Source: Paragordius varius (taxonomy: Eukaryota; Animalia; Nematomorpha). From it: a DNA stretch of 64,000 bases. Position 1 is the stretch's first letter, and every line of letters starts with the position of its first letter. The notes under the pieces were generated by a model. The model worked only from the letters and a program-made list of their open reading frames with translations, had not been told where the DNA came from and searched no databases. A program made the translations under genes and the position numbers. Positions 3,001 to 64,000 of the stretch are shown here, in pieces. Where the stretch lies: contig OZ176053.1 of the NCBI GenBank assembly GCA_964247055.1, positions 13,144,001 to 13,208,000 of the forward strand, given 5' to 3'.

Positions 3001-3105
3001 TAACACATTAATTTTTAAAGTATCGTTGTAAAAATCGGATATGAAAGAGTTTGTCAAACTATCTCTATATTTTGATGTAGTCTTACTAAGAGAATGTATA
3101 AAAAT

Positions 3106-19656: not shown

Positions 19657-22600
19657 GATTAGTTTTATACATTAATTTATAAACTATTGTTGTAATAATC
19701 GGATATGAAAGAGTTTGTCAAACTATCACTATATTTTGATGTAGTCTTATTAAGAGAATGTATAAAAAATAATTTTGTTCACCGGTGACCAATATCCGAT
19801 TTTTAAGGACAAAGTTTAACTTGAGTATTGATGCGACTAGTTTAATACATTAATTTTTAAAGTATCGTTGTAAAAATCGGATATGAAAGAGTTTGCCAAA
19901 CTATCACTATATTTTGATGTAGTCTTATTAAGAGAATGTATAAAAAATAATTTTGTTCACCGGTGACCAATATCCGATTTTTAAGGACAAAGTTTAACTT
20001 GAGTATTGATGCGACTAGTTTAACACATTAATTTTTAAAGTATCGGTGTAAAAATCGGATATGAAAGAGTTTGTCAAACTATCTCTATATTTTGATGTAG
20101 TCTTACTAAGAGAATGTATAAAAAATAATTTTGTTCACTGGTGACCAATATCCGATTTTTAAGGACAAAGTTTAACTTGAGTATTGATGCGACTGGTTAT
20201 ACCATAATTTTTAAAGTATCGTTGTAAAAATCGGATATGAAAGAGTTTGCCAAACTATCTCTATATTTTGATGTAGTCCTACTAAGAGAATGTATAAAAA
20301 ATAATTTTGTTCACCGGTGACCAATATCCGATTTTTAAGGACAAAGTTTAACTTGAGTATTGATGCGACTAGTTTAATACATTAATTTTTAAAGTATCGT
20401 TGTAAAAATCGGATATGAAAGAGTTTGCCAAACTATCTCTATATTTTGATGTAGTCCTACTAAGAGAATGTATAAAAAATAATTTTGTTCACCGGTGACC
20501 AATATCCGATTTTTAAGGACAAAGTTTAACTTGAGTATTGATGCGATTTATTGATACGACTAGTTTTATACATTAATTTTTAAAGTATCATTGTAAAAAT
20601 CGGATATGAAAGAGTTTGTCAAACTATCTCTATATTTTGATGTAGTCTTACTAAGAGAATGTATAAAAAATAATTTTGTTCACTGGTGACCAATATCCGA
20701 TTTTTAAGGACAAAGTTTAACTTGAGTATTGATGCGACTAGTTTAATACATTAATTTTTAAAGTATCGTTGTAAAAATCGGATATGAAAGAGTTTGCCAA
20801 ACTATCTCTATATTTTGATGTAGTCCTACTAAGAGAATGTATAAAAAATAATTTTGTTCACCGGTGACCAATATCCGATTTTTAAGGACAAAGTTTAACT
20901 TGAGTATTGATGCGATTTATTGATACGACTAGTTTTATACATTAATTTTTAAAGTATCATTGTAAAAATCGGATATGAAAGAGTTTGTCAAACTATCACT
21001 ATATTTTGATGTAGTCTTATTAAGAGAATGTATAAAAAATAATTTTGTTCACCGGTGACCAATATCCGATTTTTAAGGACAAAGTTTAACTTGAGTATTG
21101 ATGCGACTTATTGATACGACTAGTTTTATACATTAATTTATAAAGTATCGTTGTGAAAATCGGATATGAAAGAGTTGGTCAAACTATCTCTATATTTTGA
21201 TATAGTCTTACTAAGAGAATGTATAAAAAATAATTTTGTTCACCGGTGACCAATATCCGATTTTTAAGGACAAAGTTTAACTTGAGTATTGATGCGACTT
21301 ATTGATACGACTAGTTTTATACATTAATTTATAAAGTATCGTTGTGAAAATCGGATATGAAAGAGTTTGTCAAACTATCTCTATATTTTGATGTAGTCTT
21401 ACTAAGAGAATGTATAAAAAATAATTTTGTTCACCGGTGACCAATATCCGATTTTTAAGGACAAAGTTTAACTTGAGTATTGATGCGACTAGTTTAATAC
21501 ATTAATTTTTAAAGTATCGTTGTAAAAATCGGATATGAAAGAGTTTGCCAAACTATCTCTATATTTTGATGTAGTCCTACTAAGAGAATGTATAAAAAAT
21601 AATTTTGTTCACCGGTGACCAATATCCGATTTTTAAGGACAAAGTTTAATATGAGTATTGATGCGATTTATTGATACGACTAGTTTTATACATTAATTTT
21701 TAAAGTATCATTGTAAAAATCGGATATGAAAGAGTTTGTCAAACTATCACTATATTTTGATGTAGTCTTACTAAGAGAATGTATGAAAAATAATTTTGTT
21801 CACCGGTGACCAATATCCGATTTTTAAGGACAAAGTTTAACTTGAGTATTGATGCGACTTATTGATACGACTAGTTTTATACATTAATTTATAAAGTATC
21901 GTTGTGAAAATCGGATATGAAAGAGTTTGTCAAACTATTACTATATTTTGATGTAGTCTTACTAAGAGAATGTATAAAAAATTATTTTGTTCACCGGTGA
22001 CCAATATCCGATTTTTAAGGGCAAAGTTTAACTTGAGTAATCATGCGACTAGTTTAACACATTAATTTTTAAAGTATCGTTGTAAAAATCGGATATGAAA
22101 GAGTTTGTCAAACATCTCTATATTTTGATGTAGTCTTACTAAGAGAATGTATAAAAAATAATTTTGTTCACCGGTGACCAATATCCGATTTTTAAGGACA
22201 AAGTTTAACTTGAGTATTGATGCGACTAGTTTAACACATTAATTTTTAAAGTATCGGTGTAAAAATCGGATATGAAAGAGTTTGTCAAACTATCTCTATA
22301 TTTTGATGTAGTCTTACTAAGAGAATGTATAAAAAATAATTTTGTTCACTGGTGACCAATATCCGATTTTTAAGGACAAAGTTTAACTTGAGTATTGATG
22401 CGACTGGTTATACCATAATTTTTAAAGTATCGTTGTAAAAATCGGATATGAAAGAGTTTGTCAAACTATTTCTATATTTTGATGTAGTCTTACTAAGAGA
22501 ATGTATAAAAGATTATTTTGTTCACCGGTGACCAATATCCGATTTTTAAGGACAAAGTTTAACTTGAGTATTGATGCGACTTATTGATACGACTAGTTTT

Positions 22601-25600
22601 ATACATTAATTTATAAAGTATCGTTGTAAAAATCGGATATGAAAGAGTTTGTCAAACTATCTCTATTATTTGATGTAGTCTTGCTAAGAGAATGTATAAA
22701 AAATTATTTTGTGCACCGGTGACCAATATCCGATTTTTAAGGACAAAGTTTAACTTGAGTATTGATGCGACTAGTTTAATACATTAATTTTTAAAGTATC
22801 GTTGTAAAAATCGGATATGAAAGAGTTTGTCAAACTATCTCTATATTTTGATGTAGTCTTACTAAGAGAATGTATAAAAAATTATTTTGTTCACCGGGGA
22901 CCAATATCCGATTTTTAAGGATAAGTTTAACTTGAGTATTGATGCGACTTATTGATACGACTAGTTTTATACATTAATTTATAAAGTATCGTTGTAAAAA
23001 TCGGATATGAAAGAGTTTGTCAAACTATCTCTATTATTTGATGTAGTCTTACTAAGAGAATGTATAAAAAATAATTTTGTTCACCGGTGACCAATATCCG
23101 ATTTTTAAGGACAAAGTTTAACTTGAGTATTGATGCGACTAGTTTAATACATTAATTTTTAAAGTATCGTTGTAAAAATCGGATATGGAAAGAGTTTGTC
23201 AAACTATCTCTATATTTTGATGTAGTCTTACTAAGAGAATGTATAAAAAATTATTTTGTTCACCGGTGACCAATATCCGATTTTTAAGGACAAAGTTTAA
23301 CTTCAGTATTGATGCGACTTATTGATACGATTAGTTTTATACATTAATTTATAAAGTATTGTTGTAATAATCGGATATGAAAGAGTTTGTCAAACTATCT
23401 CTATTATTTGATGTAGTCTTGCTAAGAGAATGTATAAAAAATTATTTTGTTCACCGGTGACCAATATCCGATTTTTAAGGACAAAGTTTAACTTGAGTAT
23501 TGATGCGACTAGTTTAATACATTAATTTTTAAAGTATCGTTGTAAAAATCGGATATGGAAAGAGTTTGTCAAACTATCTCTATATTTTGATGTAGTCTTA
23601 CTAAGAGAATGTATAAAAAATTATTTTGTTCACCGGTGACCAATATCCGATTTTTAAGGACAAAGTTTAACTTGAGTATTGATGCGACTAGTTTAACACA
23701 TTAATTTTTAAAGTATCGTTGTAAAAATCGGATATGAAAGAGTTTGTCAAACTATCTCTATATTTTGATGTAGTCTTACTAAGAGAATGTATAAAAAATA
23801 ATTTTTTTCACCGGTGACCAATATCCGATTTTTAAGGACAAAGTTTAACTTGAGTATTGATACGATTTATTGATACGACTAGTTTTATACATTAATTTTT
23901 AAAGTATCGTTGTAAAAATCGGATATGAAAGAGTTTGTCAAACTATCTCTATATTTTGATGTAGTCTTACTAAGAGAATGTATAAAAAATAATTTTGTTC
24001 ACCGGTGACCAATATCCGATTTTTAAGGACAAAGTTTAACTTGAGTATTGATGCGACTAGTTTAACACATTAATTTTTAAAGTATCGTTGTAAAAATCGG
24101 ATATGAAAGAGTTTGTCAAACTATCTCTATATTTTGATGTAGTCTTACTAAGAGAATGTATAAAAAATTATTTTGTTCACCGGGGACCAATATCCGATTT
24201 TTAAGGACAAAGTTTAACTTGAGTATTGATGCGACTAGTTTAACACATTAATTTTTAAAGTATCGTTGTAAAAATCGGATATGAAAGAGTTTGTCAAACT
24301 ATCTCTATATTTTGATGTAGTCTTTCTAAGAGAATGTATAAAAAATAATTTTGTTCACCGGTGACCAATATCCGATTTTTAAGGACAAAGTTTAACTTGA
24401 GTATTGATACGATTTATTGATACGACTAGTTTTATACATAATTTTTAAAGTATCGTTGTAAAAATCGGATATGAAAGAGTTTGTCAAACTATCTCTATAT
24501 TTTGATGTAGTCTTACTAAGAGAATGTATAAAAAATAATTTTTTTTACCGGTGACCAATATCCGATTTTTAAGGACAAAGTTTAACTTGAGTATTGATGC
24601 GACTAGTTTAACACATTAATTTTTAAAGTATCGTTGTAAAAATCGGATATGAAAGAGTTTGTCAAACTATCTCTATATTTTGATGTAGTCTTACTAAGAG
24701 AATGTATAAAAAATTATTTTGTTCACCGGGGACCAATATCCGATTTTTAAGGACAAAGTTTAACTTGAGTAATCATGCGACTAATTTTATACATTAATTT
24801 TTAAAGTATTGTTGTAAAAATCGGACATGAAAGAGTTTGCCAAACTATCTCTATATATATATGTAGTCCTACTAAGAGAATGTATAAAAAAAATTTTGTT
24901 CACCGGTGACCAATATCCGATTTTTAAGGACAATTTAACTTGAGTATTGATGCGACTTATTGATACGACTAGTTTTATACATTAATACATAAAGTATCGT
25001 TGTAAAAATCGGATATGAAAGAGTTTGTCAAACTATCTCTATTATTTGATGTAGTCTTGCTAAGAAAATGTATAAAAAATTATTTTGTTCACCGGTGACC
25101 AATATCCGATTTTTAAGGACAAAGTTTAACTTGATAATTGATGCGACTAGTTTAATACCATAATTTTTAAAGTATCGTTGTACAATCCGGATATGAAAGA
25201 GTTTGTCAAACTATCTCTATATTTTGATGTAGTCTTACTAAGAGAATGTATAAAAAATTATTTTTTTCACCGGTGACCAATATCCGATTTATAAGGACAA
25301 AGTTTAACTTCAGTATTGATGCGACTTATTGATACGATTAGTTTTATACATTAATTTATAAAGTATTGTTGTAATAATCGGATATGAAAGAGTTTGTCAA
25401 ACTATCTCTATTATTTGATGTAGTCTTGCTAAGAGAATGTATAAAAAATTATTTTGTTCACCGGTGACCAATATCCGATTTTTAAGGACAAAGTTTAACT
25501 TGAGTATTGATGCGACTAGTTTAACACATTAATTTTTAAAGTATCGTTGTAAAAATCGGATATGAAAGAGTTTGTCAAACTATCTCTATATTTTGATGTA

Positions 25601-25636
25601 GTCTTACTAAGAGAATGTATAAAAAATTATTTTGTT

Positions 25637-28570
25637 CACCGGGGACCAAAATCCGATTTTTAAGGACAAAGTTTAACTTGAGTATTGATGCGACTTATTG
25701 ATACGACTAGTTTTATACATAAATTTATAAAGTATCGTTTTTAAAAATCGGATATGAAAGAGTTTGTCAAACTATCTCTATTATTTGATGTAGTCTTGCT
25801 AAGAGAATGTATAAAAAATAATTTTGTTCACCGGTGACCAATATCCGATTTTTAAGGACAAAGTTTAACTTGAGTATTGATGCGACTTATTGAGACTAGT
25901 TTTATACATTAATTTTTAAAGTATCGTTGTAAAAATCGGATATGAAAGAGTTTGTCAAACTATCTCTATATTTTGATGTAGTCTTACTAAGAGAATGTAT
26001 AAAAAATAATTTTGTTCACCGGTGACCAATATCCGATTTTTAAGGACAAAGTTTAACTTGAGTATTGATGCGACTAGTTTAACACATTAATTTTTAAAGT
26101 ATCGTTGTAAAAATCGGATATGAAAGAGTTTGTCAAACTATCTCTATATTTTGATGTAGTCTTACTAAGAGAATGTATAAAAAATTATTTTGTTCACCGG
26201 GGACCAAAATCCGATTTTTAAGGACAAAGTTTAACTTGAGTATTGATGCGACTTATTGATACGACTAGTTTTATACATAAATTTATAAAGTATCGTTTTT
26301 AAAAATCGGATATGAAAGAGTTTGTCAAACTATCTCTATTATTTGATGTAGTCTTGCTAAGAGAATGTATAAAAAATAATTTTGTTCACCGGTGACCAAT
26401 ATCCGATTTTTAAGGACAAAGTTTAACTTGAGTATTGATGCGACTTATTGAGACTAGTTTTATACATTAATTTTTAAAGTATCGTTGTAAAAATCGGATA
26501 TGAAAGAGTTTGTCAAACTATCTCTATATTTTGATGTAGTCTTACTAAGAGAATGTATAAAAAATAATTTTGTTCACCGGTGACCAATATCCGATTTTTA
26601 AGGACAAAGTTTAACTTGAGTATTGATGCGACTAGTTTAACACATTAATTTTTAAAGTATCGTTGTAAAAATCGGATATGAAAGAGTTTGTCAAACTATC
26701 TCTATATTTTGATGTAGTCTTACTAAGAGAATGTATAAAAAATTATTTTGTTCACCGGGGACCAATATCCGATTTTTAAGGACAAAGTTTAACTTGAGTA
26801 ATCATGCGACTAATTTTATACATTAATTTTTAAAGTATTGTTGTAAAAATCGGATATGAAAGAGTTTGCCAAACTATCTCTATATATATATGTAGTCCTA
26901 CTAAGAGAATGTATAAAAAAAATTTTGTTCACCGGTGACCAATATCCGATTTTTAAGGACAAAGTTTAACTTGAGTATTGATGCGACTTATTGATACGAC
27001 TAGTTTTATACATTAATACATAAAGTATCGTTGTAAAAATCGGATATGAAAGAGTTCGTCAAACTATCTCTATTATTTGATGTAGTCTTGCTAAGAGAAT
27101 GTATAAAAAATAATTTTGTTCACCGGTGACCAATATCCGATTTTTAAGGACAAAGTTTAACTTGAGTATTGATGCGACTAGTTTAAGACATTAATTTTTA
27201 AAGTATCGTTGTAAAAATCGGATATGAAAGAGTTTGTCAAACTATCTCTATATTTTGATGTAGTCTTACTAAGAGAATGTATAAAAAATTATTTTGTTCA
27301 CCGGGGACCAATATCCGATTTTTAAGGACAAAGTTTAACTTGAGTAATCATGCGACTAATTTTATACATTAATTTTTAAAGTATTGTTGTAAAAATCGGA
27401 TATGAAAGAGTTTGCCAAACTATCTCTATATATATATGTAGTCCTACTAAGAGAATGTATAAAAAAAATTTTGTTCACCGGTGACCAATATCCGATTTTT
27501 AAGGACAAAGTTTAACTTGAGTATTGATGCGACTTATTGATACGACTAGTTTTATACATTAATACATAAAGTATCGTTGTAAAAATCGGATATGAAAGAG
27601 TTTGTCAAACTATCTCTATTATTTGATGTAGTCTTGCTAAGAGAATGTATAAAAAATTATTTTGTTCACCGGGGACCAATATCCGATTTTTAAGGACAAA
27701 GTTTAACTTGAGTATTGATGCGACTAGTTTAACACATTAATTTTTAAAGTATCGTTGTAAAAATCGGATATGAAAGAGTTTGTCAAACTATCTCTATATT
27801 TTGATGTAGTCTTACTAAGAGAATGTATAAAAAATTATTTTGTTCACCGGGGACCAATATCCGATTTTTAAGGACAAAGTTTAACTTGAGTAATCATGCG
27901 ACTAATTTAATACATTAATTTTTAAAGTATTGTTGTAAAAATCGGATATGAAAGAGTTTGCCAAACTATCTCTATATATATATGTAGTCCTACTAAGAGA
28001 ATGTATAAAAAAAATTTTGTTCACCGGTGACCAATATCCGATTTTTAAGGACAAAGTTTAACTTGAGTATTGATGCGACTTATTGATACGACTAGTTTTA
28101 TACATTAATACATAAAGTATCGTTGTAAAAATCGGATATGAAAGAGTTTGTCAAACTATCTCTATTATTTGATGTAGTCTTGCTAAGAGAATGTATAAAA
28201 AATAATTTTGTTCACCGGTGACCAATATCCGATTTTTAAGGACAAAGTTTAACTTGAGTATTGATGCGACTAGTTTAACACATTAATTTTTAAAGTATCG
28301 TTGTAAAAATCGGATATGAAAGAGTTTGTCAAACTATCTCTATATTTTGATGTAGTCTTACTAAGAGAATGTATAAAAAATTATTTTGTTCACCGGGGAC
28401 CAATATCCGATTTTTAAGGACAAAGTTTAACTTGAGTAATCATGCGACTAATTTTATACATTAATTTTTAAAGTATTGTTGTAAAAATCGGATATGAAAG
28501 AGTTTGCCAAACTATCTCTATATTTTGATGTAGTCTTACTAAGAGAATGTATAAAAAAAATTTTGTTCAC
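25637..28570 (+). repeat. Short trimeric HORs: 558 bp x2 followed by 546 bp x3
   Basis: Anchors at 25637/26195/26753, then 26753/27299/27845/28391, each with matching private variants. Confidence 0.88.
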
Positions 28571-29172
28571 CGGTGACCAATATCCGATTTTTAAGGACAA
28601 AGTTTAACTTGAGTATTGATGCGACTTATTGATACGACTAGTTTTATACATTAATTTATAAGGTATCGTTGTAAAAATCGGATATGAAAGAGTTTGTCAA
28701 ACTATCTCTATTATTTGATGTAGTCTTGCTAAGAGAATGTATAAAAAATTATTTTGTTCACCGGTGACCAATATCCGATTTTTAAGGACAAAGTTTAACT
28801 TGAGTATTGATGCGACTAGTTTAATACATTAATTTTTAAAGTATCGTTGTAAAAATCGGATATGAAAGAGTTTGTCAAACTATCTCTATATTTTGATGTA
28901 GTCTTACTAAGAGAATGTATAAAAAATTATTTTGTTCACCGGGGACCAGTATCCGATTTTTAAGGACAAAGTTTAACTTGAGTATTGATGCGACTTATTG
29001 ATACGACTAGTTTTATACATAAATTTATAAAGTATCGTTTTTAAAAATCGGATATGAAAGAGTTTGTCAAACTATCTCTATTATTTGATGTAGTCTTGCT
29101 AAGAGAATGTATAAAAGATAATTTTGTTCACCGGTGACCAATATCCGATTTTTAAGGACAAAGTTTAACTTG

Positions 29173-29177
29173 AGTAT
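29173..29177 (+). other. Target-site duplication, left copy (AGTAT)
   Basis: AGTAT flanks both LTRs. Removing the element and one copy restores the satellite consensus CTTGAGTATTGATGCGAC. Confidence 0.93.
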
Positions 29178-29272
29178 TGATATGATGTTATATTATAGAA
29201 CACATAAATATATTTGATTTATTACTTTGCTACTCAATGCATACTTATAATACTTTTCTGTTATTAATATTT

Positions 29273-29318
29273 TACGTGACATGTTATATACTACGTGACA
29301 AGTTTTAGACTACGTGAC
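29273..29318 (+). promoter_or_regulatory. Three TACGTGAC motifs at exact 19-bp spacing in U3 (second copy 33471-33516); candidate enhancer array
   Basis: Motifs start at 29273, 29292 and 29311, and the intervening bases are degenerate copies of a 19-bp unit. The function is inferred. Confidence 0.6.
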
Positions 29319-29406
29319 TGTTTTATATATGCACACTCATCATTCGCAGAAATTTGTATATGTTAATTCACGATAAAAAATATATAATAACATCCGTTAA
29401 AAAAAC

Positions 29407-29414
29407 TATATAAA
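29407..29414 (+). promoter_or_regulatory. Candidate TATA box TATATAAA in the LTR (second copy 33605-33612)
   Basis: Consensus match downstream of the motif array and upstream of AATAAA. The AT-rich context weakens the call. Confidence 0.45.
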
Positions 29415-29492
29415 CAACAACTTCTTTAAGTGCATTGCATTACTGTGTTTTTTCCCTTATTGTTTTATAATAAATTATACATAAACTAATAT

Positions 29493-29502
29493 TGGCGACG
29501 AG
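29493..29502 (+). promoter_or_regulatory. Primer-binding site TGGCGACGAG, complementary to the 3' end of tRNA-Ser(GCU) (...CUCGUCGCCA)
   Basis: Starts 1 nt after the 5' LTR with TGG, the complement of CCA. The tRNA assignment is from recalled eukaryotic tRNA-Ser(GCU) 3' ends and was not searched. Confidence 0.82.
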
Positions 29503-29526
29503 AAAAAAAAAGATTTATTCTGCCTA

Positions 29527-32500
29527 ATGGAAAATCCCGGAGATACATCATTTAGTAATGCACAAAATCCTCTAAATCGTATAATTCTTGAACCATTTGA
29601 CGAATGTTACAATTTCAAAAATTATGTCAAGCACATAGAAAGGGTACTCGCGGCCAGGGATATTCCTATCACGGATTCCAATATAAAAAAATTATTTTTA
29701 GCTTTCGGTGGTATTAAAATTTTGAACAAAATTGAAAATATTCTATATCCTGATACCATCGAAGATTTGGAATGGCCGGAAATCTATAAAATTGCAGTTC
29801 AAATCTATGCTCCAGACAAAAGTCTATGGGTGAATAGATGTGCATTTTATCGTATTCGTCGTGGTGATAATGAATCTATTCTTTCGTATTTAGAACGTTT
29901 GAAAATTTTGGCCGACAATTCTGGATTTGATTCGGACATTTCTAACAAAATCAGGGATATATTTTTGATTGGATTAAATCAACCCAGATTAGAAAGAGAA
30001 CTCCACATAAAATATCCGCTCGGTAAGTTAGATGACAAACCACTGACACTACAAATGTTGGTCGATATGGCTTTAAGTTTTGAGGAGGCCGATAATCTTC
30101 CCTCGCAAATCAATAAGCTTAAAGTGGATAGATCCAGAAATGTAAAACCTCATGGGAGTTTTAACAAGGGCCATTTTAACAATAATAATTATAAAAACAA
30201 TAAGAATAATGATGTCCGGGATAATAATGATACTAAAGTAAATTGCCGAAATTGTGGATCAGTACATGTGAGAAACAAGTGTCCGGCTTGGGGCAAAACG
30301 TGCTACAATTGCAACAAAAATAACCACTTTAGTTCAATGTGCAAAACAAAGTTGGTGAGAAATTTAGATCAAATTAGATCTATAAAAGCGGGCACTACCC
30401 CTAAAATAAAAGTGAAGATCAACAATAATATGATAGATATGATTTTCGATACCGGTGCTGACTGCTGTCTCATAAGTCAACAAATATGGAAGCAGATCGG
30501 TAGCCCTAAGTTAACGTGGTCCGATCAAATAACCACGTATGATAATAATAAGATAACAATCTTAGGGAAAACTATGGTCACTGTGACGTTGTACAATGAA
30601 AAGAAAACGTTACCATGTATCGTAACTAAAAGCAATTTTGATCCAATTTTTGGATTACCTTGGATAAAAGCGTACAAGCTACCTTTTCCAAAAGGTGTAA
30701 TCAATAATATAAATTCTAATGAGAAGATGGAGCTGACCAAAATATTTCCAAAACTATTCTCAAAGGAACTTGGTTGTTACAACGGCAATCCGATCAAAAT
30801 TTTTTTGACACCGGATGCTAAACCAAAAGCTTTTCCATGCCGTAGAGTTCCTCTACCATTGCAACCATTGGTAGAAAAAGAATTGAATAGATTGTTAGAT
30901 TTGGGGATTATAGAACCAATAGACCCAACAACAACGGAGATATCTTGGGCAACCCCAACGGTCAACGTGTTAAAATCCAATGGGGAGGCTCGTATCTGCG
31001 CCGATTTTCGTGTCACAATCAATCCTTATCTATCAAAAGATTCTCATATCATTCCGACATTTGACCAATTATTGGGTAAAATCGGAAATGGACATTCATT
31101 TTCAGTTTTGGATCTTAAGGATGCCTACTTACAACTACCGGTTGATAAAGAATGCTCTAATATTCTGACAATTACAACACACAGAGGTTACTTTACGTAT
31201 AAACGATTACCTTTCGGGCTCACAAATGCTCCAATGATATTTCAACGAGTTATGGATCAAATTCTGGATGATTGCACAGGCGTTTGTGCTTATCTGGATG
31301 ATGTTCTGGTAACCGGCAATACAGACGCCCAACACAAAGCAAATCTTGAGCATGTGTTGAAGAAACTTGAACAGGCCGGATTCCGTTTGCAACCAGATAA
31401 AATGAAATTCTTCCAGGAAAAAGTAATCTACATGGGATACGAAATATCTAAAAGAGGTATTAAGCCAACGGATGAAAAAATCAAGGCTATTTTGAAATGT
31501 CCTGTTCCAAAGGACAAAACAACATTACGGTCCTTTTTAGGACTATTAAACTTTCATGAAAAATTTATTCCAAGATTACATTCAGCCATAAGTGATCTGC
31601 ACACGTTAACTGGAAACAAAATGCCATGGAAATGGGAGAATATTCATGATAAACAATTTGCACTGTCAAAACAACTAATAGCAAATTTTGTGGAACTGAT
31701 TCCGTACAATCCGCAATTGCCATTATTGATTGAGACCGATGCTTCAAACGAAGGTTTGGGTGCCATCCTTTTCCATATAACCGAAGATGGCAAGCGGCCA
31801 ATCTCTTTCGCATCCAGGAAATGTTTAAATTCTGAAAAACATTATTCGACTATCGAAAGAGAGGCCAAGGCGATTTTGTTCGCGGTAAACAAATTTCACC
31901 CTTTCATATATGGGAGATCTTTTAAAATATTGACTGATCATAAACCACTGATTAAATTATTTGGGGAAGACCGGAACTTAACCGGAGTCAATAATATAAA
32001 ATTATTACGTTGGATTTATAAAATATCGGGGTATGATTATACCATTCATTTCAATAAAGGGGTTCAAAATTTAGCTGATCCTCTATCAAGATTAGCAATT
32101 GACGATCCTGAAATGGATGATGATCATGCTGTAGCTGAAAAAATTCGGTTCTTATCGATGAACAATTTAAACATTAATAAAAAAAATGTATTAGTTCAGT
32201 CCAATAAGGACCCGGTGATAAAAAAATTAAAAATGGCATTAAATTCCAACAATTGGGATGACCCAGATTTAAAAAATTATCAATCACATCGCAACGCTAT
32301 CCAAGCATCGTATGGTTTAGTGTATTTGGAGGATAGGCTCATTGTTCCTAGATCCATGCAAAATGAAGTCCTAAACTACTTTCACACTGGACACCCAGGG
32401 GTAAGTACCATGAAGTCCCTGGCGCGCCACAGTGTATATTGGCCAGGCTTGGACCAAAGTATTGAATTGCTTGCGAAGACATGTGACGCATGTCAAAGAT

Positions 32501-33363
32501 ACAAGCCCAATGTCCAGGAAAATCCAACATACAAATGGAATTTCAACACCGCCGTCTGGGAAAGAATACACATAGATATTGCTGGTCCCATTGATAATTT
32601 CTACTGGCTGGTAACAATTGACAGCTCGTCCAGATGGCTGGAAGTTAATTTATTGAAACAAGTTACGAGCAGGTCTGTTTTAAATTGCTTAGAACAATTG
32701 TTTGCGAGATATGGTTTTCCTAAAATGATAGTAAGTGATAATGCATCGTATTTTGTATCGCACGATTTTGATGAAAGGCTTAAACACTTAAACATCAAAC
32801 ATGTTACGTCGAGTCCGTATCACCCACGAACGAATGGGTTGGTAGAAAGATCTATTTACACATTGAAAACTAAATATAAAGCTACGAAGAGGGCTGACAT
32901 CTCTCCGCAAGAAGCAATGAATACCATTTTGTGGAGCTATCGGCAAACAATTCATAGTGCAACGAGAGCAACACCGTGCTCATTATTCCTAAAAAGAGAA
33001 TTGTTAGGTCCCTTGTCATGGTTAAAGACAATACCATCAGATTTTACGGATAATACTAGAGCCCCCTTACGAGAATTTGACGTTGATGATGCTATTCTGA
33101 TTAAAAATGAAACAGCAGAGGGGTGGCGGAAAGGAAAAGTAATTGAAAGAACAGGATTATTATCTTACAAGACTGATGACGGTAGCAAAATTCAGCGAAA
33201 ACACGCCGATCAGCTACAGAAGTCTGTTATGGCACAACCCGCCCTTGACATTGTACCAGAGATCCCAGTTACGGAAGCTGTGGAGTCGGAGTGTAACTTG
33301 ACAGAAGTACAAAGCCGTTATCCTCGCCGGGAACGAAAAGCTCCAGATCGTCTTTCTTATTAA
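29527..33363 (+). CDS. gag-pol: Single-ORF Gag-Pol polyprotein, 1278 aa, uninterrupted
   Basis: Two zinc knuckles, CRNCGSVHVRNKC and CYNCNKNNHFSSMC (30244-30342). Aspartic protease FDTGAD (D at 30448). RT motifs LDLKDAYLQL, RLPFGL and YLDD (31291-31302). RNase H motifs ETDAS (D at 31738), IERE, TDHKPL and ADPLSRL. Integrase HTGH...CDAC (from 32383), HID, SDN and D-X35-E (E at 32845). Confidence 0.98.
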   Translation: MENPGDTSFSNAQNPLNRIILEPFDECYNFKNYVKHIERVLAARDIPITDSNIKKLFLAFGGIKILNKIENILYPDTIEDLEWPEIYKIAVQIYAPDKSLWVNRCAFYRIRRGDNESILSYLERLKILADNSGFDSDISNKIRDIFLIGLNQPRLERELHIKYPLGKLDDKPLTLQMLVDMALSFEEADNLPSQINKLKVDRSRNVKPHGSFNKGHFNNNNYKNNKNNDVRDNNDTKVNCRNCGSVHVRNKCPAWGKTCYNCNKNNHFSSMCKTKLVRNLDQIRSIKAGTTPKIKVKINNNMIDMIFDTGADCCLISQQIWKQIGSPKLTWSDQITTYDNNKITILGKTMVTVTLYNEKKTLPCIVTKSNFDPIFGLPWIKAYKLPFPKGVINNINSNEKMELTKIFPKLFSKELGCYNGNPIKIFLTPDAKPKAFPCRRVPLPLQPLVEKELNRLLDLGIIEPIDPTTTEISWATPTVNVLKSNGEARICADFRVTINPYLSKDSHIIPTFDQLLGKIGNGHSFSVLDLKDAYLQLPVDKECSNILTITTHRGYFTYKRLPFGLTNAPMIFQRVMDQILDDCTGVCAYLDDVLVTGNTDAQHKANLEHVLKKLEQAGFRLQPDKMKFFQEKVIYMGYEISKRGIKPTDEKIKAILKCPVPKDKTTLRSFLGLLNFHEKFIPRLHSAISDLHTLTGNKMPWKWENIHDKQFALSKQLIANFVELIPYNPQLPLLIETDASNEGLGAILFHITEDGKRPISFASRKCLNSEKHYSTIEREAKAILFAVNKFHPFIYGRSFKILTDHKPLIKLFGEDRNLTGVNNIKLLRWIYKISGYDYTIHFNKGVQNLADPLSRLAIDDPEMDDDHAVAEKIRFLSMNNLNINKKNVLVQSNKDPVIKKLKMALNSNNWDDPDLKNYQSHRNAIQASYGLVYLEDRLIVPRSMQNEVLNYFHTGHPGVSTMKSLARHSVYWPGLDQSIELLAKTCDACQRYKPNVQENPTYKWNFNTAVWERIHIDIAGPIDNFYWLVTIDSSSRWLEVNLLKQVTSRSVLNCLEQLFARYGFPKMIVSDNASYFVSHDFDERLKHLNIKHVTSSPYHPRTNGLVERSIYTLKTKYKATKRADISPQEAMNTILWSYRQTIHSATRATPCSLFLKRELLGPLSWLKTIPSDFTDNTRAPLREFDVDDAILIKNETAEGWRKGKVIERTGLLSYKTDDGSKIQRKHADQLQKSVMAQPALDIVPEIPVTEAVESECNLTEVQSRYPRRERKAPDRLSY

Positions 33364-33375
33364 AGGTGGGAGATA
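33362..33375 (+). promoter_or_regulatory. Polypurine tract AAAGGTGGGAGATA (plus-strand primer), overlapping the ORF stop codon
   Basis: Purine-rich run directly upstream of the 3' LTR. The TAA stop at 33361-33363 overlaps it, so there is no 3' UTR or env space. Confidence 0.85.
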
Positions 33376-33689
33376 TGATATGATGTTATATTATAGAACA
33401 CATAAATATATTTGATTTATTACTTTGCTACTCAATGCATACTTATAATACTTTTCTGTTATTAATATTTTACGTGACATGTTATATACTACGTGACAAG
33501 TTTTAGACTACGTGACTGTTTTATATATGCACACTCATCATTCGCAGAAATTTGTATATGTTAATTCACGATAAAAAATATATAATAACATCCGTTAAAA
33601 AAACTATATAAACAACAACTTCTTTAAGTGCATTGCATTACTGTGTTTTTTCCCTTATTGTTTTATAATAAATTATACATAAACTAATA
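33376..33689 (+). repeat. 3' LTR (314 bp)
   Basis: No mismatch with the 5' LTR found in a by-eye comparison, including the homopolymer runs. Preceded by the PPT and followed by the TSD. Confidence 0.97.
33667..33672 (+). terminator. Candidate polyadenylation signal AATAAA in the 3' LTR (5' copy 29469-29474)
   Basis: Canonical hexamer 17 nt from the LTR end, in the expected R/U5 position. Confidence 0.55.
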
Positions 33690-33694
33690 AGTAT
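33690..33694 (+). other. Target-site duplication, right copy (AGTAT)
   Basis: Lies immediately after the 3' LTR end and matches 29173-29177. Confidence 0.93.
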
Positions 33695-36600
33695 TGATGC
33701 GACTTATTGAGACTAGTTTTATACATTAATTTATAAAGTATCGTTGTGAAAATCGGATATGAATGAGTTTGTCAAACTATCTCTATATTTTGATGTATTC
33801 TTACTAAGAGAATGTATAAAAAATAATTTTGTTCACTGGGGACCAATATCCGATTTTTAAGGACGAAGTTTAACTTGAGTATTGATGCGACTTATTGATA
33901 CGACTAGTTTTATACATTAATTTATAAAGTATCGTAGTAAAAATCGGATATGAAAGAGTTTGTCAAACTATCTCTATATTTTGATGTAGTCTTGCTAAGA
34001 GAATGTATAAAAAATAATTTTGTTCACCGGTGACCAATATCCGATTTTTAAGGACAAAGTTTAACTTGAGTATTGATGCGATTTATTGATACGACTAGTT
34101 TTATACATTAATTTTTAAAGTATCATTGTAAAAATCGGATATGAAATAGTTTGTCAAACTATCACTATATTTTGATGTAGTCTTACTAAGAGAATGTATA
34201 AAAAATAATTTTGTTCACCGGTGACCAATATCCGATTTTTAAGGACAAAGTTTAACTTGAGTATTGATGCGATTTATTGATACGACTAGTTTTATACATT
34301 AATTTTTAAAGTATCATTGTAAAAATCGGATATGAAATAGTTTGTCAAACTATCACTATATTTTGATGTAGTCTTACTAAGAGAATGTATAAAAAATAAT
34401 TTTGTTCACCGGTGACCAATATCCGATTTTTAAGGACAAAGTTTAACTTGAGTATTGATGCGACTTATTGATACGACTAGTTTTATACATTAATTTATAA
34501 AGTATCGTTGTGAAAATCGGATATGAAAGAGTTGGTCAAACTATCTCTATATTTTGATGTAGTCTTGCTAAGAGAATGTATAAAAAATAATTTTGTTCAC
34601 CGGTGACCAATATCCGATTTTTAAGGACAAAGTTTAACTTGAGTATTGATGCGACTAGTTTAACACATTAATTTTTAAAGTATCGTTGTAAAATCGGATA
34701 TGAAAGAGTTTGTCAAACTATCTCTATATTTTGATGTAGTCTTACTAAGAGAATGTATAAAAAATTATTTTGTTCACCGGAGACCAATATCCGATTTTTA
34801 AGGACAAAGTTTAACTTGAGTAATCATGCGACTAATTTTATACATTAATTTTTAAAGTATTGTTGTAAAAATCGGATATGAAAGAGTTTGCCAAACTATC
34901 TCTATATTTATATGTAGTCCTACTAAGAGAATTCAAAAATAAATTTTGTTCACCGGTGACCAATATCCGATTTTTAAGGACAAAGTTTAACTTGAGTATT
35001 GATGCGACTTATTGATACGACTAGTTTTATACATTAATTTATAAAGTATCGTTGTAAAAATCGGATATGAAAGAGTTTGTCAAACTATCTCTATTATTTG
35101 ATGTAGTCTTGCTAAGAGAATGTATAAAAAATTATTTTGTTCACCGGTGACCAATATCCGATTTTTAAGGACAAAGTTTAACTTGAGTATTGATGCGACT
35201 AGTTTAATACATTAATTTTTAAAGTATCGTTGTAAAAATCGGATATGAAAGAGTTTGTCAAACTATCTCTATATTTTGATGTAGTCTTACTAAGAGAATG
35301 TATAAAAAATTATTTTGTTCACCGGGGACCAATATCCGATTTTTAAGGATAAGTTTAACTTGAGTATTGATGCAACTTATTGATACGACTAGTTTTATAC
35401 ATTAATTTATAAAGTATCGTTGTAAAAATCGGATATGAAAGAGTTTGTCAAACTATCTCTATTATTTGATGTAGTCTTACTAAGAGAATGTATAAAAAAT
35501 TATTTGGTTCACCGGGGACCAATATCCGATTTTTAAGGACAAAGTTTAACTTGAGTATTGATGGGACTTATTGATACGACTAGTTTAATACATTAATTTT
35601 TAAAGTATCGTTGTAAAAATCGGATATGAAAGAGTTTGTCAAACTATCTCTATATTTTGATGTAGTCTTACTAAGAGAATATATAAAAAATTATTTGGTT
35701 CACCGGGGACCAATATCCGATTTTTAAGGACAAAGTTTAACTTGAGTAATCATGCGACTAGTTAAATACATTAATTTTTAAAGTATCGTTGTAAAAATCG
35801 GATATGGAAAGAGTTTGTCAAACTATCTCTATATTTTGATGTAGTCTTACTAAGAGAATGTATAAAAAATTATTTTGTTCACCGGTGACCAATATCCGAT
35901 TTTTAAGGACAAAGTTTAACTTGAATATTGATGCGACTAGTTTAATACATTAATTTTTAAAGTATCGTTGAACAATCCGGATAGGAAAGAGTTTGCCAAA
36001 CTATCTCTATATTTTGATGTAGTCCTACTAAGAGAATGTATAAAAAATAATTTTGTTCACCGGTGACCAATATCCGATTTTTAAGGACAAAGTTTAACTT
36101 GAGTATTGATACGATTTATTGATACGACTAGTTTTATACATTAATTTTTAAAGTATCGTTGTAAAAATCGGATATGAAAGAGTTTGTCAAACTATCTCTA
36201 TATTTTGATGTAGTCTTACTAAGAGAATGTATAAAAAATAATTTTGTTCACCGGTGACCAATATCCGATTTTTAAGGACAAAGTTTAACTTGAGTATTGA
36301 TGCGACTAGTTTAACACATTAATTTTAAAGTATCGTTGTAAAAATCGGATATGGAAAGAGTTTGTCAAACTATCTCTATATTTTGATGTAGTCTTACTAA
36401 GAGAATGTATAAAAAATTATTTTGTTCACCGGTGACCAATATCCGATTTTTAAGGAAAAAGTTTAACTTGAGTATTAATGCGACTAGTTTAACACATTAA
36501 TTTTTAAAGTATCGTTGTAAAAATCGGATATGAAAGAGTTTGTCAAAATATCTCTATATTTTGATGTAGTCTTACTAAGAGAATGTATAAAAAATAATTT

Positions 36601-36974
36601 TGTTCACCGGTATATCCGATTTTTAAGGACAAAGTTTAACTTGAGTATTGATGCGACTGGTTATAGCATAATTTTTAAAGTATCGTTGTAAAAATCGGAT
36701 ATGAAAGAGTTTGTCAAACTATCTCTATAATTTGATGTAGTCTTACTAAGAGAATGTATAAAAAATAATTTTGTTCACCGGTGACCAATATCCGATTTTT
36801 AAGGACAAAGTTTAACTTGAGTATTGATGCGATTTATTGATACGACTAGTTTTATACATTAATTTTTAAAGTATCATTGTAAAAATCGGATATGAAATAG
36901 TTTGTCAAACTATCACTATATTTTGATGTAGTCTTACTAAGAGAATGTATAAAAAATAATTTTGTTCATCGGTG

Positions 36975-39900
36975 ACCAATATCCGATTTTTAAGGACAAA
37001 GTTTAACTTGAGTATTGATGCGACTTATTGATACGACTAGTTTTATACATTAATTTTTAAAGTATCGTTGTGAAAATCGGATATGAAAGAGTTGGTCAAA
37101 CTATCTCTATATTTTGATGTAGTCTTGCTAAGAGAATGTATAAAAAATAATTTTGTTCACCGGTGACCAATATCCGATTTTTAAGGACAAAGTTTAACTT
37201 GAGTATTGATGCGACTAGTTTAACACATTAATTTTTAAAGTATCGTTGTAAAAATCGGATATGAAAGAGTTTGCCAAACTATCTCTATATTTATATGTAG
37301 TCCTACTAAGAGAATTTAAAAATAAATTTTGTTCACCGGTGACCAATATCCGATTTTTAAGGACAAAGTTTAACTTGAGTATTGATGCGACTTATTGATA
37401 CGACTAGTTTTATACATTAATTTATAAAGTATCGTTGTAAAAATCGGATATGAAAGAGTTTGTCAAACTATCTCTATTATTTGATGTAGTCTTGCTAAGA
37501 GAATGTATAAAAAATTATTTTGTTCACCGGTGACCAATATCCGATTTTTAAGGACAAAGTTTAACTTGAGTATTAATGCGACTAGTTTAACACATTAATT
37601 TTTAAAGTATCGTTGTAAAAATCGGATATGAAAGAGTTTGTCAAACTATCTCTATAATTTGATGTAGTCTTACTAAGAGAATGTATAAAAGATTATTTTG
37701 TTTACCGGTGACCAATATCCGATTTTTAAGGACAAAGTTTAACTTGAGTATTGATGCGACTTATTGATACGACTAGTTTTATACATTAATTTATAAAGTA
37801 TCGTTGTAAAAATCGGATATGAAAGAGGTCAAACTATCTCTATTATTTGATGTAGTCTTGCTAAGAGAATGTATAAAAAATTATTTTGTTCACCGGTGAC
37901 CAATATACGATTTTTAAGGACAAAGTTAAACTTGAGTATTCATGCGACTAGTTTAATACATTAATTTTTAAAGTATCGTTGTAAAAATCGGATATGAAAG
38001 AGTTTGTCAAACTATCTCTATATTTTGATGTAGTCTTACTAAGAGAATGTATAAAAAATTATTTTGTTCACCGGGGACCAATATCCGATTTTTAAGGACA
38101 AAGTTTAACTTGAGTATTAATGCGACTAGTTTAACACATTAATTTTTAAAGTATCGTTGTAAAAATCGGATATGAAAGAGTTTGTCAAAATATCTCTATA
38201 TTTTGATGTAGTCTTACTAAAATGTATAAAAAATAATTTTGTTCACCGGTGACCAATATCCGATTTTTAAGGACAAAGTGTAACTTGAGTATTGATGCGA
38301 CTGGTTATACCATAATTTTTAAAGTATCGTTGTAAAAATCGGATATGAAAGAGTTTGTCAAACTATCTCTATAATTTGATGTAGTCTTACTAAGAGAATG
38401 TATAAAAGATTATTTTGTTCACCGGTGACAATATCCGATTTTTAAGGACAAAGTTTAACTTGAGTATTGATGCGACTTATTGATACGACTAGTTTTATAC
38501 ATTAATTTATAAAGTATCGTTGTAAAAATCGGATATGAAAGAGTTTGTCAAACTATCTCTATTATTTGATGTAGTCTTGCTAAGAGAATGTATAAAAAAT
38601 TATTTTGTTCACCGGTGACCAATATCCGATTTTTAAGGACAAAGTTTAACTTGAGTATTGATGCGACTAGTTTAATACATTAATTTTTAAAGTATCGTTG
38701 TAAAAATCGGATATGAAAGAGTTTGTCAAACTATCTCTATATTTTGATGTAGTCTTACTAAGAGAATGTATAAAAAATTATTTTGTTCACCGGAGACCAA
38801 TATCCGATTTTTAAGGATAAGTTTAACTTGAGTATCGATGCGACTTATTGATACGACTAGTTTTATACATTAATTTATAAAGTATCGTTGTAAAAATCGG
38901 ATATGAAAGAGTTTGTCAAACTATCTCTATTATTTGATGTAGTCTTACTAAGAGAATGTATAAAAAATAATTTTGTTCACCGGTGACCAATATCCGATTT
39001 TTAAGGACAAAGTTTAACTTGAGTATTGATGCGACTAGTTTAATACATTAATTTTTAAAGTATCGTTGTAAAAATCGGATATGAAACAGTTTGTCAAACT
39101 ATCTCTATATTTTGATGTAGTCTTACTAAGAGAATGTATAAAAAATTATTTGGTTCACCGGGGACCAATATCCGATTTTTAAGGACAAAGTTTAACTTGA
39201 GTAATCTAGCGACTAGTTTAATACATTAATTTTTAAAGTATCGTTGTAAAAATCGGATATGGAAAGAGTTTGTCAAACTATCTCTATATTTTGATGTAGT
39301 CTTACTAAGAGAATGTATAAAAAATTATTTTGTTCACCGGTGACCAATATCCGATTTTTAAGGACAAAGTTTAACTTGAGTATTAATGCGACTAGTTTAA
39401 CACATTAATTTTTAAAGTATCGTTGTAAAAATCGGATATGAAAGAGTTTGTCAAAATATCTCTATATTTTGATGTAGTCTTACTAAGAGAATGTATAAAA
39501 AATAATTTTGTTCACCGGTGACCAATATCCGATTTTTAAGGACAAAGTTTAACTTGAGTATTGATGCGACTGGTTATACCATAATTTTTAAAGTATCGTT
39601 GTAAAAATCGGATATGAAAGAGTTTGTCAAACTATCTCTATAATTTGATGTAGTCTTACTAAGAGAATGTATAAAAGATTATTTTGTTCACCGGTGACCA
39701 ATATCCGATTTTTAAGGACAAAGTTTTACTTGAGTATTGATGCGACTTATTGATACGACTAGTTTTATACATTAATTTATAAAGTATCGTTGTAAAAATC
39801 GGATATGAAAGAGTTTGTCAAACTATCTCTATTATTTGATGTAGTCTTGCTAAGAGAATGTATAAAAAATTATTTTGTTCACTGGTGACCAATATCCGAT

Positions 39901-42900
39901 TTTTAAGGACAAAGTTTAACTTGAGTATTGATGCGACTAGTTTAATACATTAATTTTTAAAGTATCGTTGTAAAAATCGGATATGAAAGAGTTTGTCAAA
40001 CTATCTCTATTATTTGATGTAGTCTTGCTAAGAGAATGTATAAAAAATTATTTTGTTCACCGGTGACCAATATCCGATTTTTAAGGACAAAGTTTAACTT
40101 GAGTATTGATGCGACTAGTTTAATACATTAATTTTTAAAGTATCGTTGTAAAAATCAGATATGGAAAGAGTTTGTCAAACTATCTCTATATTTTGATGTA
40201 GTCTTACTAAGAAAATGTATAAAAAATTATTTTGTTCACCGGTGACCAATATCCGATTTTTAAGGACAAAGTTTAACTTGAGTATTGATGCGACTTATTG
40301 ATACGACTAGTTTTATACATTAATTTATAAAGTATCGTTGTAAAAATCGGATATGAAAGTATTTGTCAAACTATCTCTATAATTTGATGTAGTCTTACTA
40401 AGAGAATGTATAAAAGATTATTTTGTTCACCGGTGACCAATATCCGATTTTTAAGGACAAAGTTTAACTTGAGTATTGATGCGACTTATTGATACGACTA
40501 GTTTTATACATTAATTTTTAAAGTATCGTTGTGAAAATCGGATATGAAAGAGTTGGTCAAACTATCTCTATATTTTGATGTAGTCTTGCTAAGAGAATGT
40601 ATAAAAAATAATTTTGTTCACCGGTGACCAATATCCGATTTTTAAGGACAAAGTTTAACTTGAGTATTGATGCGACTAGTTTAACACATTAATTTTTAAA
40701 GTATCGTTGTAAAAATCGGATATGAAAGAGTTTGCCAAACTATCTCTATATTTATATGTAGTCCTACTAAGAGAATTTAAAAATAAATTTTGTTCACCGG
40801 TGACCAATATCCGATTTTTAAGGACAAAGTTTAACTTGAGTATTGATGCGACTTATTGATACGACTAGTTTTATACATTAATTTATAAAGTATCGTTGTA
40901 AAAATCGGATATGAAAGAGTTTGTCAAACTATCTCTATTATTTGATGTAGTCTTGCTAAGAGAATGTATAAAAAATTATTTTGTTCACCGGTGACCAATA
41001 TCCGATTTTTAAGGACAAAGTTTAACTTGAGTATTAATGCGACTAGTTTAACACATTAATTTTTAAAGTATCGTTGTAAAAATCGGATATGAAAGAGTTT
41101 GTCAAACTATCTCTATAATTTGATGTAGTCTTACTAAGAGAATGTATAAAAGATTATTTTGTTTACCGGTGACCAATATCCGATTTTTAAGGACAAAGTT
41201 TAACTTGAGTATTGATGCGACTTATTGATACGACTAGTTTTATACATTAATTTATAAAGTATCGTTGTAAAAATCGGATATGAAAGAGGTCAAACTATCT
41301 CTATTATTTGATGTAGTCTTGCTAAGAGAATGTATAAAAAATTATTTTGTTCACCGGTGACCAATATACGATTTTTAAGGACAAAGTTAAACTTGAGTAT
41401 TCATGCGACTAGTTTAATACATTAATTTTTAAAGTATCGTTGTAAAAATCGGATATGAAAGAGTTTGTCAAACTATCTCTATATTTTGATGTAGTCTTAC
41501 TAAGAGAATGTATAAAAAATTATTTTGTTCACCGGGGACCAATATCCGATTTTTAAGGACAAAGTTTAACTTGAGTATTAATGCGACTAGTTTAACACAT
41601 TAATTTTTAAAGTATCGTTGTAAAAATCGGATATGAAAGAGTTTGTCAAAATATCTCTATATTTTGATGTAGTCTTACTAAAATGTATAAAAAATAATTT
41701 TGTTCACCGGTGACCAATATCCGATTTTTAAGGACAAAGTGTAACTTGAGTATTGATGCGACTGGTTATACCATAATTTTTAAAGTATCGTTGTAAAAAT
41801 CGGATATGAAAGAGTTTGTCAAACTATCTCTATAATTTGATGTAGTCTTACTAAGAGAATGTATAAAAGATTATTTTGTTCACCGGTGACAATATCCGAT
41901 TTTTAAGGACAAAGTTTAACTTGAGTATTGATGCGACTTATTGATACGACTAGTTTTATACATTAATTTATAAAGTATCGTTGTAAAAATCGGATATGAA
42001 AGAGTTTGTCAAACTATCTCTATTATTTGATGTAGTCTTGCTAAGAGAATGTATAAAAAATTATTTTGTTCACCGGTGACCAATATCCGATTTTTAAGGA
42101 CAAAGTTTAACTTGAGTATTGATGCGACTAGTTTAATACATTAATTTTTAAAGTATCGTTGTAAAAATCGGATATGAAAGAGTTTGTCAAACTATCTCTA
42201 TATTTTGATGTAGTCTTACTAAGAGAATGTATAAAAAATTATTTTGTTCACCGGAGACCAATATCCGATTTTTAAGGATAAGTTTAACTTGAGTATCGAT
42301 GCGACTTATTGATACGACTAGTTTTATACATTAATTTATAAAGTATCGTTGTAAAAATCGGATATGAAAGAGTTTGTCAAACTATCTCTATTATTTGATG
42401 TAGTCTTACTAAGAGAATGTATAAAAAATAATTTTGTTCACCGGTGACCAATATCCGATTTTTAAGGACAAAGTTTAACTTGAGTATTGATGCGACTAGT
42501 TTAATACATTAATTTTTAAAGTATCGTTGTAAAAATCGGATATGAAACAGTTTGTCAAACTATCTCTATATTTTGATGTAGTCTTACTAAGAGAATGTAT
42601 AAAAAATTATTTGGTTCACCGGGGACCAATATCCGATTTTTAAGGACAAAGTTTAACTTGAGTAATCTAGCGACTAGTTTAATACATTAATTTTTAAAGT
42701 ATCGTTGTAAAAATCGGATATGGAAAGAGTTTGTCAAACTATCTCTATATTTTGATGTAGTCTTACTAAGAGAATGTATAAAAAATTATTTTGTTCACCG
42801 GTGACCAATATCCGATTTTTAAGGACAAAGTTTAACTTGAGTATTAATGCGACTAGTTTAACACATTAATTTTTAAAGTATCGTTGTAAAAATCGGATAT

Positions 42901-43976
42901 GAAAGAGTTTGTCAAAATATCTCTATATTTTGATGTAGTCTTACTAAGAGAATGTATAAAAAATAATTTTGTTCACCGGTGACCAATATCCGATTTTTAA
43001 GGACAAAGTTTAACTTGAGTATTGATGCGACTGGTTATACCATAATTTTTAAAGTATCGTTGTAAAAATCGGATATGAAAGAGTTTGTCAAACTATCTCT
43101 ATAATTTGATGTAGTCTTACTAAGAGAATGTATAAAAGATTATTTTGTTCACCGGTGACCAATATCCGATTTTTAAGGACAAAGTTTTACTTGAGTATTG
43201 ATGCGACTTATTGATACGACTAGTTTTATACATTAATTTATAAAGTATCGTTGTAAAAATCGGATATGAAAGAGTTTGTCAAACTATCTCTATTATTTGA
43301 TGTAGTCTTGCTAAGAGAATGTATAAAAAATTATTTTGTTCACTGGTGACCAATATCCGATTTTTAAGGACAAAGTTTAACTTGAGTATTGATGCGACTA
43401 GTTTAATACATTAATTTTTAAAGTATCGTTGTAAAAATCGGATATGAAAGAGTTTGTCAAACTATCTCTATTATTTGATGTAGTCTTGCTAAGAGAATGT
43501 ATAAAAAATTATTTTGTTCACCGGTGACCAATATCCGATTTTTAAGGACAAAGTTTAACTTGAGTATTGATGCGACTAGTTTAATACATTAATTTTTAAA
43601 GTATCGTTGTAAAAATCAGATATGGAAAGAGTTTGTCAAACTATCTCTATATTTTGATGTAGTCTTACTAAGAAAATGTATAAAAAATTATTTTGTTCAC
43701 CGGTGACCAATATCCGATTTTTAAGGACAAAGTTTAACTTGAGTATTGATGCGACTTATTGATACGACTAGTTTTATACATTAATTTATAAAGTATCGTT
43801 GTAAAAATCGGATATGAAAGTATTTGTCAAACTATCTCTATAATTTGATGTAGTCTTACTAAGAGAATGTATAAAAGATTATTTTGTTCACCGGTGACCA
43901 ATATCCGATTTTTAAGGACAAAGTTTAACTTGAGTATTGATGCGACTTATTGATACGACTAGTTTTATACATTAAT
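36975..43976 (+). repeat. Tandem higher-order repeat, 19 monomers, period 3461 bp, 2 near-identical copies
   Basis: The rare indels GAAAGAGGTC (37821/41282), TTACTAAAATGT, GGTGACAATAT, TTTTACT and GAAAGTATT all recur at 3461. Confidence 0.92.
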
Positions 43977-63800: not shown

Positions 63801-64000
63801 TTTTTAAGGACAAAGTTTAACTTGAGCATTGATGCGACTAGTTTAATACATTAATTTTTAAAGTATCGTTGTAAAAATCGGATATGAAAGAGTTTGTCAA
63901 ACTATCTCTATATTTTGATGTAGTCTTACTAAGAGAATGTATAAAAAATTATTTTGTTCACCGGGGACCAATATCCGATTTTTAAGGACAAAGTTTAAGT
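48838..64000 (+). repeat. Domain built from a 13-monomer HOR (2365 bp), with full, truncated and rearranged copies
   Basis: Full copies at 48838-51203 and 60326-62691 (13 anchors counted). The markers TTTTTCAGG, TCGAATATG, CTCTAATATTTG and TACAATCGG recur. Confidence 0.88.

Follow-up and report, generated by a model that had tools for sequence, protein, structure and literature searches.

A recent, structurally complete Ty3/gypsy insertion from a low-copy dispersed family within a satellite array of Paragordius varius

The 64,000-bp stretch of the Paragordius varius genome analyzed here (the window; C4:13144001-13208000; contig C4 is 14.2 Mb long, in an assembly of 44 contigs totaling 110.6 Mb) consists of a satellite array interrupted by a single transposable element, a Ty3/gypsy (Metaviridae) long terminal repeat (LTR) retrotransposon of 4,512 bp at window positions 29178-33689. 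The repeat unit of the array is a 369-bp dimer, in which a 178-bp monomer alternates with one of 191 bp, as determined with Tandem Repeats Finder (TRF) and from counts of monomer spacing. TRF reports a single tandem array split into two parts (4-29177 and 33711-63998), and a BLAST search with the satellite dimer, all matches of which lie on one strand, leaves only 29192-33689 uncovered. Thus, an earlier note on this DNA was right in describing the element as the sole non-satellite DNA in the 64 kb. Its description of the array as homogeneous holds for the regular 369-bp repeat but not for the sequence of the units, which are only ~91-93% identical to one another. The guanine-plus-cytosine content is 27-28% throughout the window, except for a rise to 37% at 29-34 kb. 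An origin of the satellite from the element or its LTR was considered and rejected, the two having only a 15-nucleotide (nt) chance match in common. The best-conserved stretch of each monomer contains a perfect 10-bp palindrome, TCACCGGTGA (window 29128-29137), which could be a candidate protein-binding site.

The element is bounded by a clean target-site duplication (TSD), as the earlier note had claimed: AGTAT stands on both sides, and deletion of the element together with one AGTAT leaves a 240-bp stretch that aligns to the neighboring monomers without gaps at 97.9% identity. Because the two flanks rebuild an in-phase monomer with AGTAT duplicated, the insertion is a clean integrase-type event and not an assembly join. 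Between the LTRs, which are identical at 314 of 314 bases, the 1278-aa (amino acid) open reading frame (ORF) is unbroken and all of the expected catalytic residues are confirmed (Table 1). The order of domains in Pfam is zf-CCHC, protease, reverse transcriptase, RNase H, integrase zinc domain, and integrase core. The two CCHC arrays occupy aa 240-252 and 259-272; they are followed by the protease DTG, the reverse transcriptase YLDD, and the D/E/D set of RNase H. The integrase zinc domain has H953 and H956 and then a C-X2-C pair (HHCC), and the integrase core carries D1017, D1071, and E1107; the spacer between the last two is exactly 35 residues long (D-D-X35-E). The ORF protein gave no chromodomain match in Pfam at E <= 0.01, and Pfam found no extra or targeting domain in the integrase tail, where a short peptide motif might escape such a search.

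Signals for transcription and reverse transcription can likewise be recognized. Within the 19-bp repeat of the LTR, three evenly spaced ACGTGAC motifs begin at 29274, 29293, and 29312; this repeat is conserved between both LTR types of the family (described below) and appears enhancer-like, with ACGTGAC as a likely transcription-factor site. One host transfer RNA (tRNA) gene ends in CTCGTCG (C5:6882418, called tRNA-Ser(gct) by ARAGORN), and its 3' end plus CCA is the exact complement of the 10-nt primer-binding site (PBS), TGGCGACGAG. The polypurine tract (PPT), AAAGGTGGGAGA, is found in nearly all family copies, with one base changed in two. A damaged family copy at C1:8457019-8460935 (minus strand) has a longer PBS, in which 19 nt are complementary to tRNA-Ser(GCU); the PBS is followed by an inverted 153-bp piece of the copy's own interior (1152-1304) and then by the interior from position 793, and the copy has a normal 5-bp TSD, TTAAT. 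This arrangement looks like a template-switch accident in reverse transcription whose product still integrated. So read, the primer imprint that it keeps would support priming by tRNA-Ser(GCU).

Table 1. Features of the window, in window coordinates.
Feature	Position	Strand	Evidence or remarks
Left satellite array	4..29177	+	TRF, monomer spacing, BLAST coverage
Left TSD copy AGTAT, 5 bp	29173..29177	+	Empty-site rebuild
5' LTR, 314 bp, TG to TA	29178..29491	+	314/314 identical to 3' LTR
19-bp tandem repeat, 2.9 copies, presumed U3	29273..29327 (3' LTR copy 33471..33525)	+	TRF
TATA-like box TATATAAA	29407..29414	+	Conserved across family LTRs; putative promoter element
AATAAA signal, 3' of TATA-like box	29469..29474	+	Conserved across family LTRs; putative role
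PBS TGGCGACGAG, one nt past 5' LTR	29493..29502	+	Complements tRNA-Ser(GCU) 3' end including CCA
Gag-pol ORF, 1,278 aa + stop, no internal stops	29527..33363	+	
Nucleocapsid, two CCHC zinc knuckles, aa 240-272	30244..30342	+	Pfam zf-CCHC
Aspartyl protease, aa 291-378, FDTGAD at aa 307	30397..30660	+	Pfam
Reverse transcriptase, aa 501-640, YLDD at aa 589	31027..31446	+	Pfam RVT_1, E = 5e-28
RNase H, aa 703-836; D738, E778, D804	31633..32034	+	Pfam RT_RNaseH, E = 7e-27
Integrase, H2C2 zinc aa 940-995, core aa 1018-1129	32344..32913	+	Pfam Integrase_H2C2 (aa 940-995), rve (match at aa 1018-1100)
PPT AAAGGTGGGAGA	33362..33373	+	Abuts stop codon; ends 2 nt before 3' LTR
3' LTR, 314 bp	33376..33689	+	314/314 identical to 5' LTR
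Right TSD copy AGTAT, 5 bp	33690..33694	+	Empty-site rebuild
Right satellite array, phase and strand as left array	33690..63998	+	TRF, empty-site rebuild, BLAST

The assignment to Ty3/gypsy is given by paired LTRs with a TSD, the order protease-reverse transcriptase-RNase H-integrase with the motifs of each, and a tRNA-type PBS together with a PPT. Within this group, membership in the Mag or K02A2.6-like lineage is plausible, judged from architecture and database neighbors. The Mag lineage includes Mag of Bombyx mori, SURL of sea urchins, Jule of Xiphophorus, and the Mag-like Cer elements of C. elegans, and its integrases are not known to carry a C-terminal chromodomain. The window element resembles Mag in its animal host, its domain order, its single gag-pol polyprotein, its two CCHC arrays, and the lack of a chromodomain. 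Unlike Mag, its first CCHC array has a 3-residue spacing before the His, the canonical spacing being 4. Two CCHC arrays are usual in Mag nucleocapsids (Llorens et al., 2008, PMC2577118), and Mag has been described as the most widespread gypsy lineage among invertebrates (PMC6238403, PMC8220671). In the literature searched, no link between K02A2.6 and a named clade was found. The neighbors of the window protein, both in a protein atlas and in a word-based protein search, are either unnamed or bear the NCBI name "K02A2.6-like," the latter coming from arthropods, echinoderms, and nematodes. In the atlas the protein falls among animal K02A2.6-like reverse transcriptase/integrase clusters, and the best matches of the word-based search come from a moth (38% identity), a sea cucumber (32%), and an ant (31%). 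Overall, identity to the best database proteins, which are gag-pol proteins of similar length (~1,300 aa) and domain content, amounts to 28-38%. Since it is only this high, the element is, on protein identity, a new low-copy gypsy family of an otherwise known type.

When the LTR was used as a query, 40 matches turned up in the assembly. An exhaustive pattern search for a conserved 35-mer (<=3 mismatches) found 38 sites, all within these 40 matches, and thus no family LTRs in the assembly beyond those already found; the reversed control gave none, and a search with the internal region recovered the same elements. The matches resolve into 24 loci, of which seven are solo LTRs, one is a truncated copy, and the remaining 16 have paired LTRs; they are spread over contigs C1-C8, C10, and C11. 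When the flanks of all 24 loci (1.5-2.5 kb per side) were compared with the satellite by BLAST, satellite was found beside the window copy only, and the other 23 loci lie outside it. One copy has a urocanase exon ~300 bp away and a carboxylesterase exon in its vicinity. Twelve TSDs are legible; every one is 5 bp long, and they have no common motif.

Two LTR types exist in the family. Most copies carry a 337-bp LTR (main type), and a short type is found only in the window copy and in a sister copy at C3:9244029-9248515 (plus strand). The two types are 86% identical, differing by 5-bp and 16-bp indels and by substitutions clustered at both ends. A foreign origin of the short LTR, to which this low identity might point, was rejected, as the difference comes down to two indels and clustered substitutions. 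A genome-wide search for the diagnostic short-LTR pattern found no further copies beyond chance matches, the control counts being equal. The C3 sister has the TSD GTGTT, an LTR pair of 98.1% identity, and a broken frame, and it is nested in an older family member on the opposite, minus strand, whose integrase region it interrupts (C3:9243116-9252131 for the pair).

Several observations bear on the age of the window copy. With no difference in 314 bp, the 95% upper bound for its LTR divergence is ~1%, so that "very recent" is to be understood relative to the family and not as an absolute date. In the other paired copies, LTR-pair identity ranges from 91.7 to 99.1% (12 of the 13 examined); the thirteenth, C7:7.92M, has one truncated LTR, leaving only 181 bp comparable. 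The frames of all 13 are broken, with the longest open frame at most 922 aa, versus 1,292 aa in the window copy. Compared with the window copy, all copies have internal regions of 97-98% identity, and pairwise distances are star-like at 1.5-2.1%. LTR mismatches or disabling substitutions, which the earlier note had named as evidence against its claim, were absent on alignment and on inspection of the ORF.

The coding sequence also retains a record of selection. A site was called lineage-specific if six or more of seven main-type copies disagree with the window copy there; 16 such sites are common to the window copy and the C3 sister, and 26 are found in the window copy alone. As its two LTRs do not differ, the changes at these sites predate the insertion and arose in a replicating lineage. 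Of 39 ORF changes in the window lineage, 21 are synonymous and 18 non-synonymous; compared with a random expectation of 21% synonymous, this is a significant excess (P = 6e-6, or P = 0.002 if 30% is assumed). The non-synonymous changes are scattered, and the integrase tail (aa 1130-1278) differs from that of main-type copies at two residues only. The synonymous excess indicates that the polyprotein of the window lineage has been under purifying selection. Together with the identical LTRs, the intact ORF, and the PBS matched by a host tRNA, this upholds the earlier suggestion of a very recent insertion: the window copy is young and structurally complete, appears autonomous, and is possibly still competent.

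To estimate how often an insertion would meet the satellite by chance, two independent conserved 22-mers of the monomer were counted across the genome (<=1 mismatch), giving 17,675 and 17,584 matches and none for the reversed controls. The first occurs once per 192.5 bp of satellite within the window, and its count multiplied by this spacing puts the satellite at ~3.4 Mb, or 3.1% of the assembly. The matches show a strand bias, with 15,000 on one strand versus 2,600 on the other. Arrays are located at 1.06-1.41 Mb on C1, 0.53-0.64 Mb on C2, and 0.59-0.73 Mb on C5, as well as on C4, where sampling every 50 kb found satellite from 13.00 to 13.78 Mb with several orientation changes and one non-satellite sample (13.50 Mb). 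On at least four large contigs, arrays are found at a distance of 0.4-1.4 Mb from one end, a position compatible with a near-terminal centromere and with subterminal heterochromatin alike.

On this basis, 0.74 of the 24 family insertions are expected in satellite, and the probability of at least one is 0.53. The observed 1 of 24 (4.2%) therefore represents no enrichment over the ~3.1% share. In addition, the target context of the insertion recurs in ~300 of the ~320 window monomers, with ~17,600 monomers genome-wide, yet no reuse of the site in satellite was found. One satellite insertion, a chance-level share, and no site reuse mean that the distribution lends targeting no support. The earlier note had proposed a satellite-targeting (centrophilic) element and had set beforehand, as the check that could overturn the proposal, an LTR search of the assembly with classification of the flanks; this search has now been carried out and went against it, with 23 of 24 loci outside satellite. 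The family is an ordinary, dispersed one, of which a single recent insertion fell in satellite.

The locus is thus very probably to be explained as a recent, complete Ty3/gypsy insertion from a low-copy dispersed family (24 loci) that came to lie in satellite by chance. In outline, transcription would start from an LTR equipped with the putative TATA-like box and the three ACGTGAC repeats, and translation would yield one gag-pol polyprotein. tRNA-Ser(GCU) would prime reverse transcription on the 10-nt PBS, and the plus strand would start at the PPT. The D,D35E integrase would then insert the copy with a 5-bp target duplication and no clear sequence preference. As ~3% of the genome is satellite, roughly one insertion in thirty would fall there by chance, which would account for the position of the window copy. 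Retention may help too, in that an insertion into satellite harms no gene, so that the copy could persist intact. The window copy represents the only family lineage seen here that was kept under purifying selection after an older burst, to which the 13 other paired-LTR copies examined, now dead, belong.

Some points weigh against this explanation. The census comes from a single assembly, and satellite is often under-assembled, so that copies there may have been missed and the 3% is a lower bound. The distribution of the old copies mirrors retention as well as insertion preference, and the informative young class comprises only two members, both of which lie in repeated DNA (satellite in one case, an older family copy in the other). 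Present-day activity, finally, is read from sequence alone.

The repeated-DNA setting of both short-LTR copies is also what two alternatives draw on. In one of these, the integrase of the short-LTR sub-lineage would guide new copies to the satellite or to its chromatin, in the manner of the plant elements CRM, ATHILA, and Tal1. The only intact copy with identical LTRs does lie far inside an array that extends over at least 780 kb, and the two short-LTR copies have four amino acid changes in common, two of them in the integrase tail (aa 1141 and 1236). Were the element truly satellite-homing, it would be an animal counterpart of plant centromeric retrotransposons. CRM, ATHILA, and Tal1/ALE show many-fold, recurrent enrichment in plant centromeric arrays. 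The window element is like them in being a young LTR element, still intact, embedded in a long satellite array, and unlike them in that 23 of its 24 family loci are outside satellite and no targeting module was matched by Pfam. A single satellite copy at the chance-level share, one insertion despite some 300 equivalent monomers in the window, the absence of a chromodomain or other targeting domain in Pfam, TSDs without sequence preference, and a C3 sister of the same sub-lineage outside the satellite all speak against targeting, which is accordingly improbable.

The other alternative holds that the young sub-lineage prefers silent, repeat-rich chromatin generally and not the satellite itself. 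One short-LTR copy being in satellite and the other nested in an older family copy (C3:9.243-9.252 Mb) fits this view, and because the family's own DNA makes up an estimated <0.1% of the genome, a self-nested insertion is unlikely by chance. However, the pattern comprises two copies only, and the older copies, with coding DNA 97-98% identical, are found in varied contexts, including beside genes. Such a preference is as doubtful as targeting, and there is equally little to expect from the notion that the two-copy sub-lineage has shifted its insertion preference to silent repeats (satellite and transposon nests), although it would, if true, be the first animal Mag-type element caught entering the satellite or heterochromatin niche. 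Least credible of all is that the insertion is not young, its LTRs having been equalized by gene conversion or its junction being an assembly artefact in a difficult repeat: as a matter of general knowledge, satellite regions are easily misassembled and conversion between LTRs is a known possibility, but the two flanks, with their perfect 5-bp duplication, close up into a single in-phase monomer, the 3.8-kb ORF is free of stops whereas the frames of the 13 other paired-LTR copies examined are all broken, an ORF would not be kept intact by conversion between LTRs, and the lineage-specific changes show the mark of purifying selection.

A chance insertion of a young, dispersed element also agrees with a recent survey. 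Across 325 eukaryote genomes, Gypsy elements are reported to be the commonest interruption of satellite arrays, and a location within an array is reported to go with a higher proportion of intact LTR elements than a location outside one (bioRxiv 10.64898/2026.09.17.752431). The window element is like the surveyed Gypsy interruptions in being intact and inside a satellite array; the survey dealt with annotated centromeres, whereas the satellite here is a putative one. The locus thereby offers a worked case in which an intact LTR element occurs in satellite without need for targeting, as well as a clean, fully annotated example of a new gypsy family (<=38% identity) in a little-studied animal genome. 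It may further serve as a dated marker inside a large array, the 4.5-kb insertion not having been homogenized away since landing.

Further observations concern the distribution of the family and its relatives. C7 (9.56 Mb, 8.6% of the assembly) holds 8 of the 24 family loci. Two copies on this contig, C7:8800091-8805745 and 8818854-8824500, have a common 3' flank, an internal break at the same position, and ~1.1 kb of extra sequence; on the strength of the common flank and break, the pair is, as far as sequence can tell, a segmental duplication, ~18.8 kb apart. Also on C7, at 8.52-8.74 Mb, a chance pattern is repeated five times, a hint that a block may have been duplicated there. Other gypsy families, related to this one at 64-74% DNA identity, each occur in multiple copies (e.g., C5:8801871-8805485 and C4:5786023-5788069, along with about a dozen loci at 64-70% identity), and several lineages of this type are thus present in the genome.

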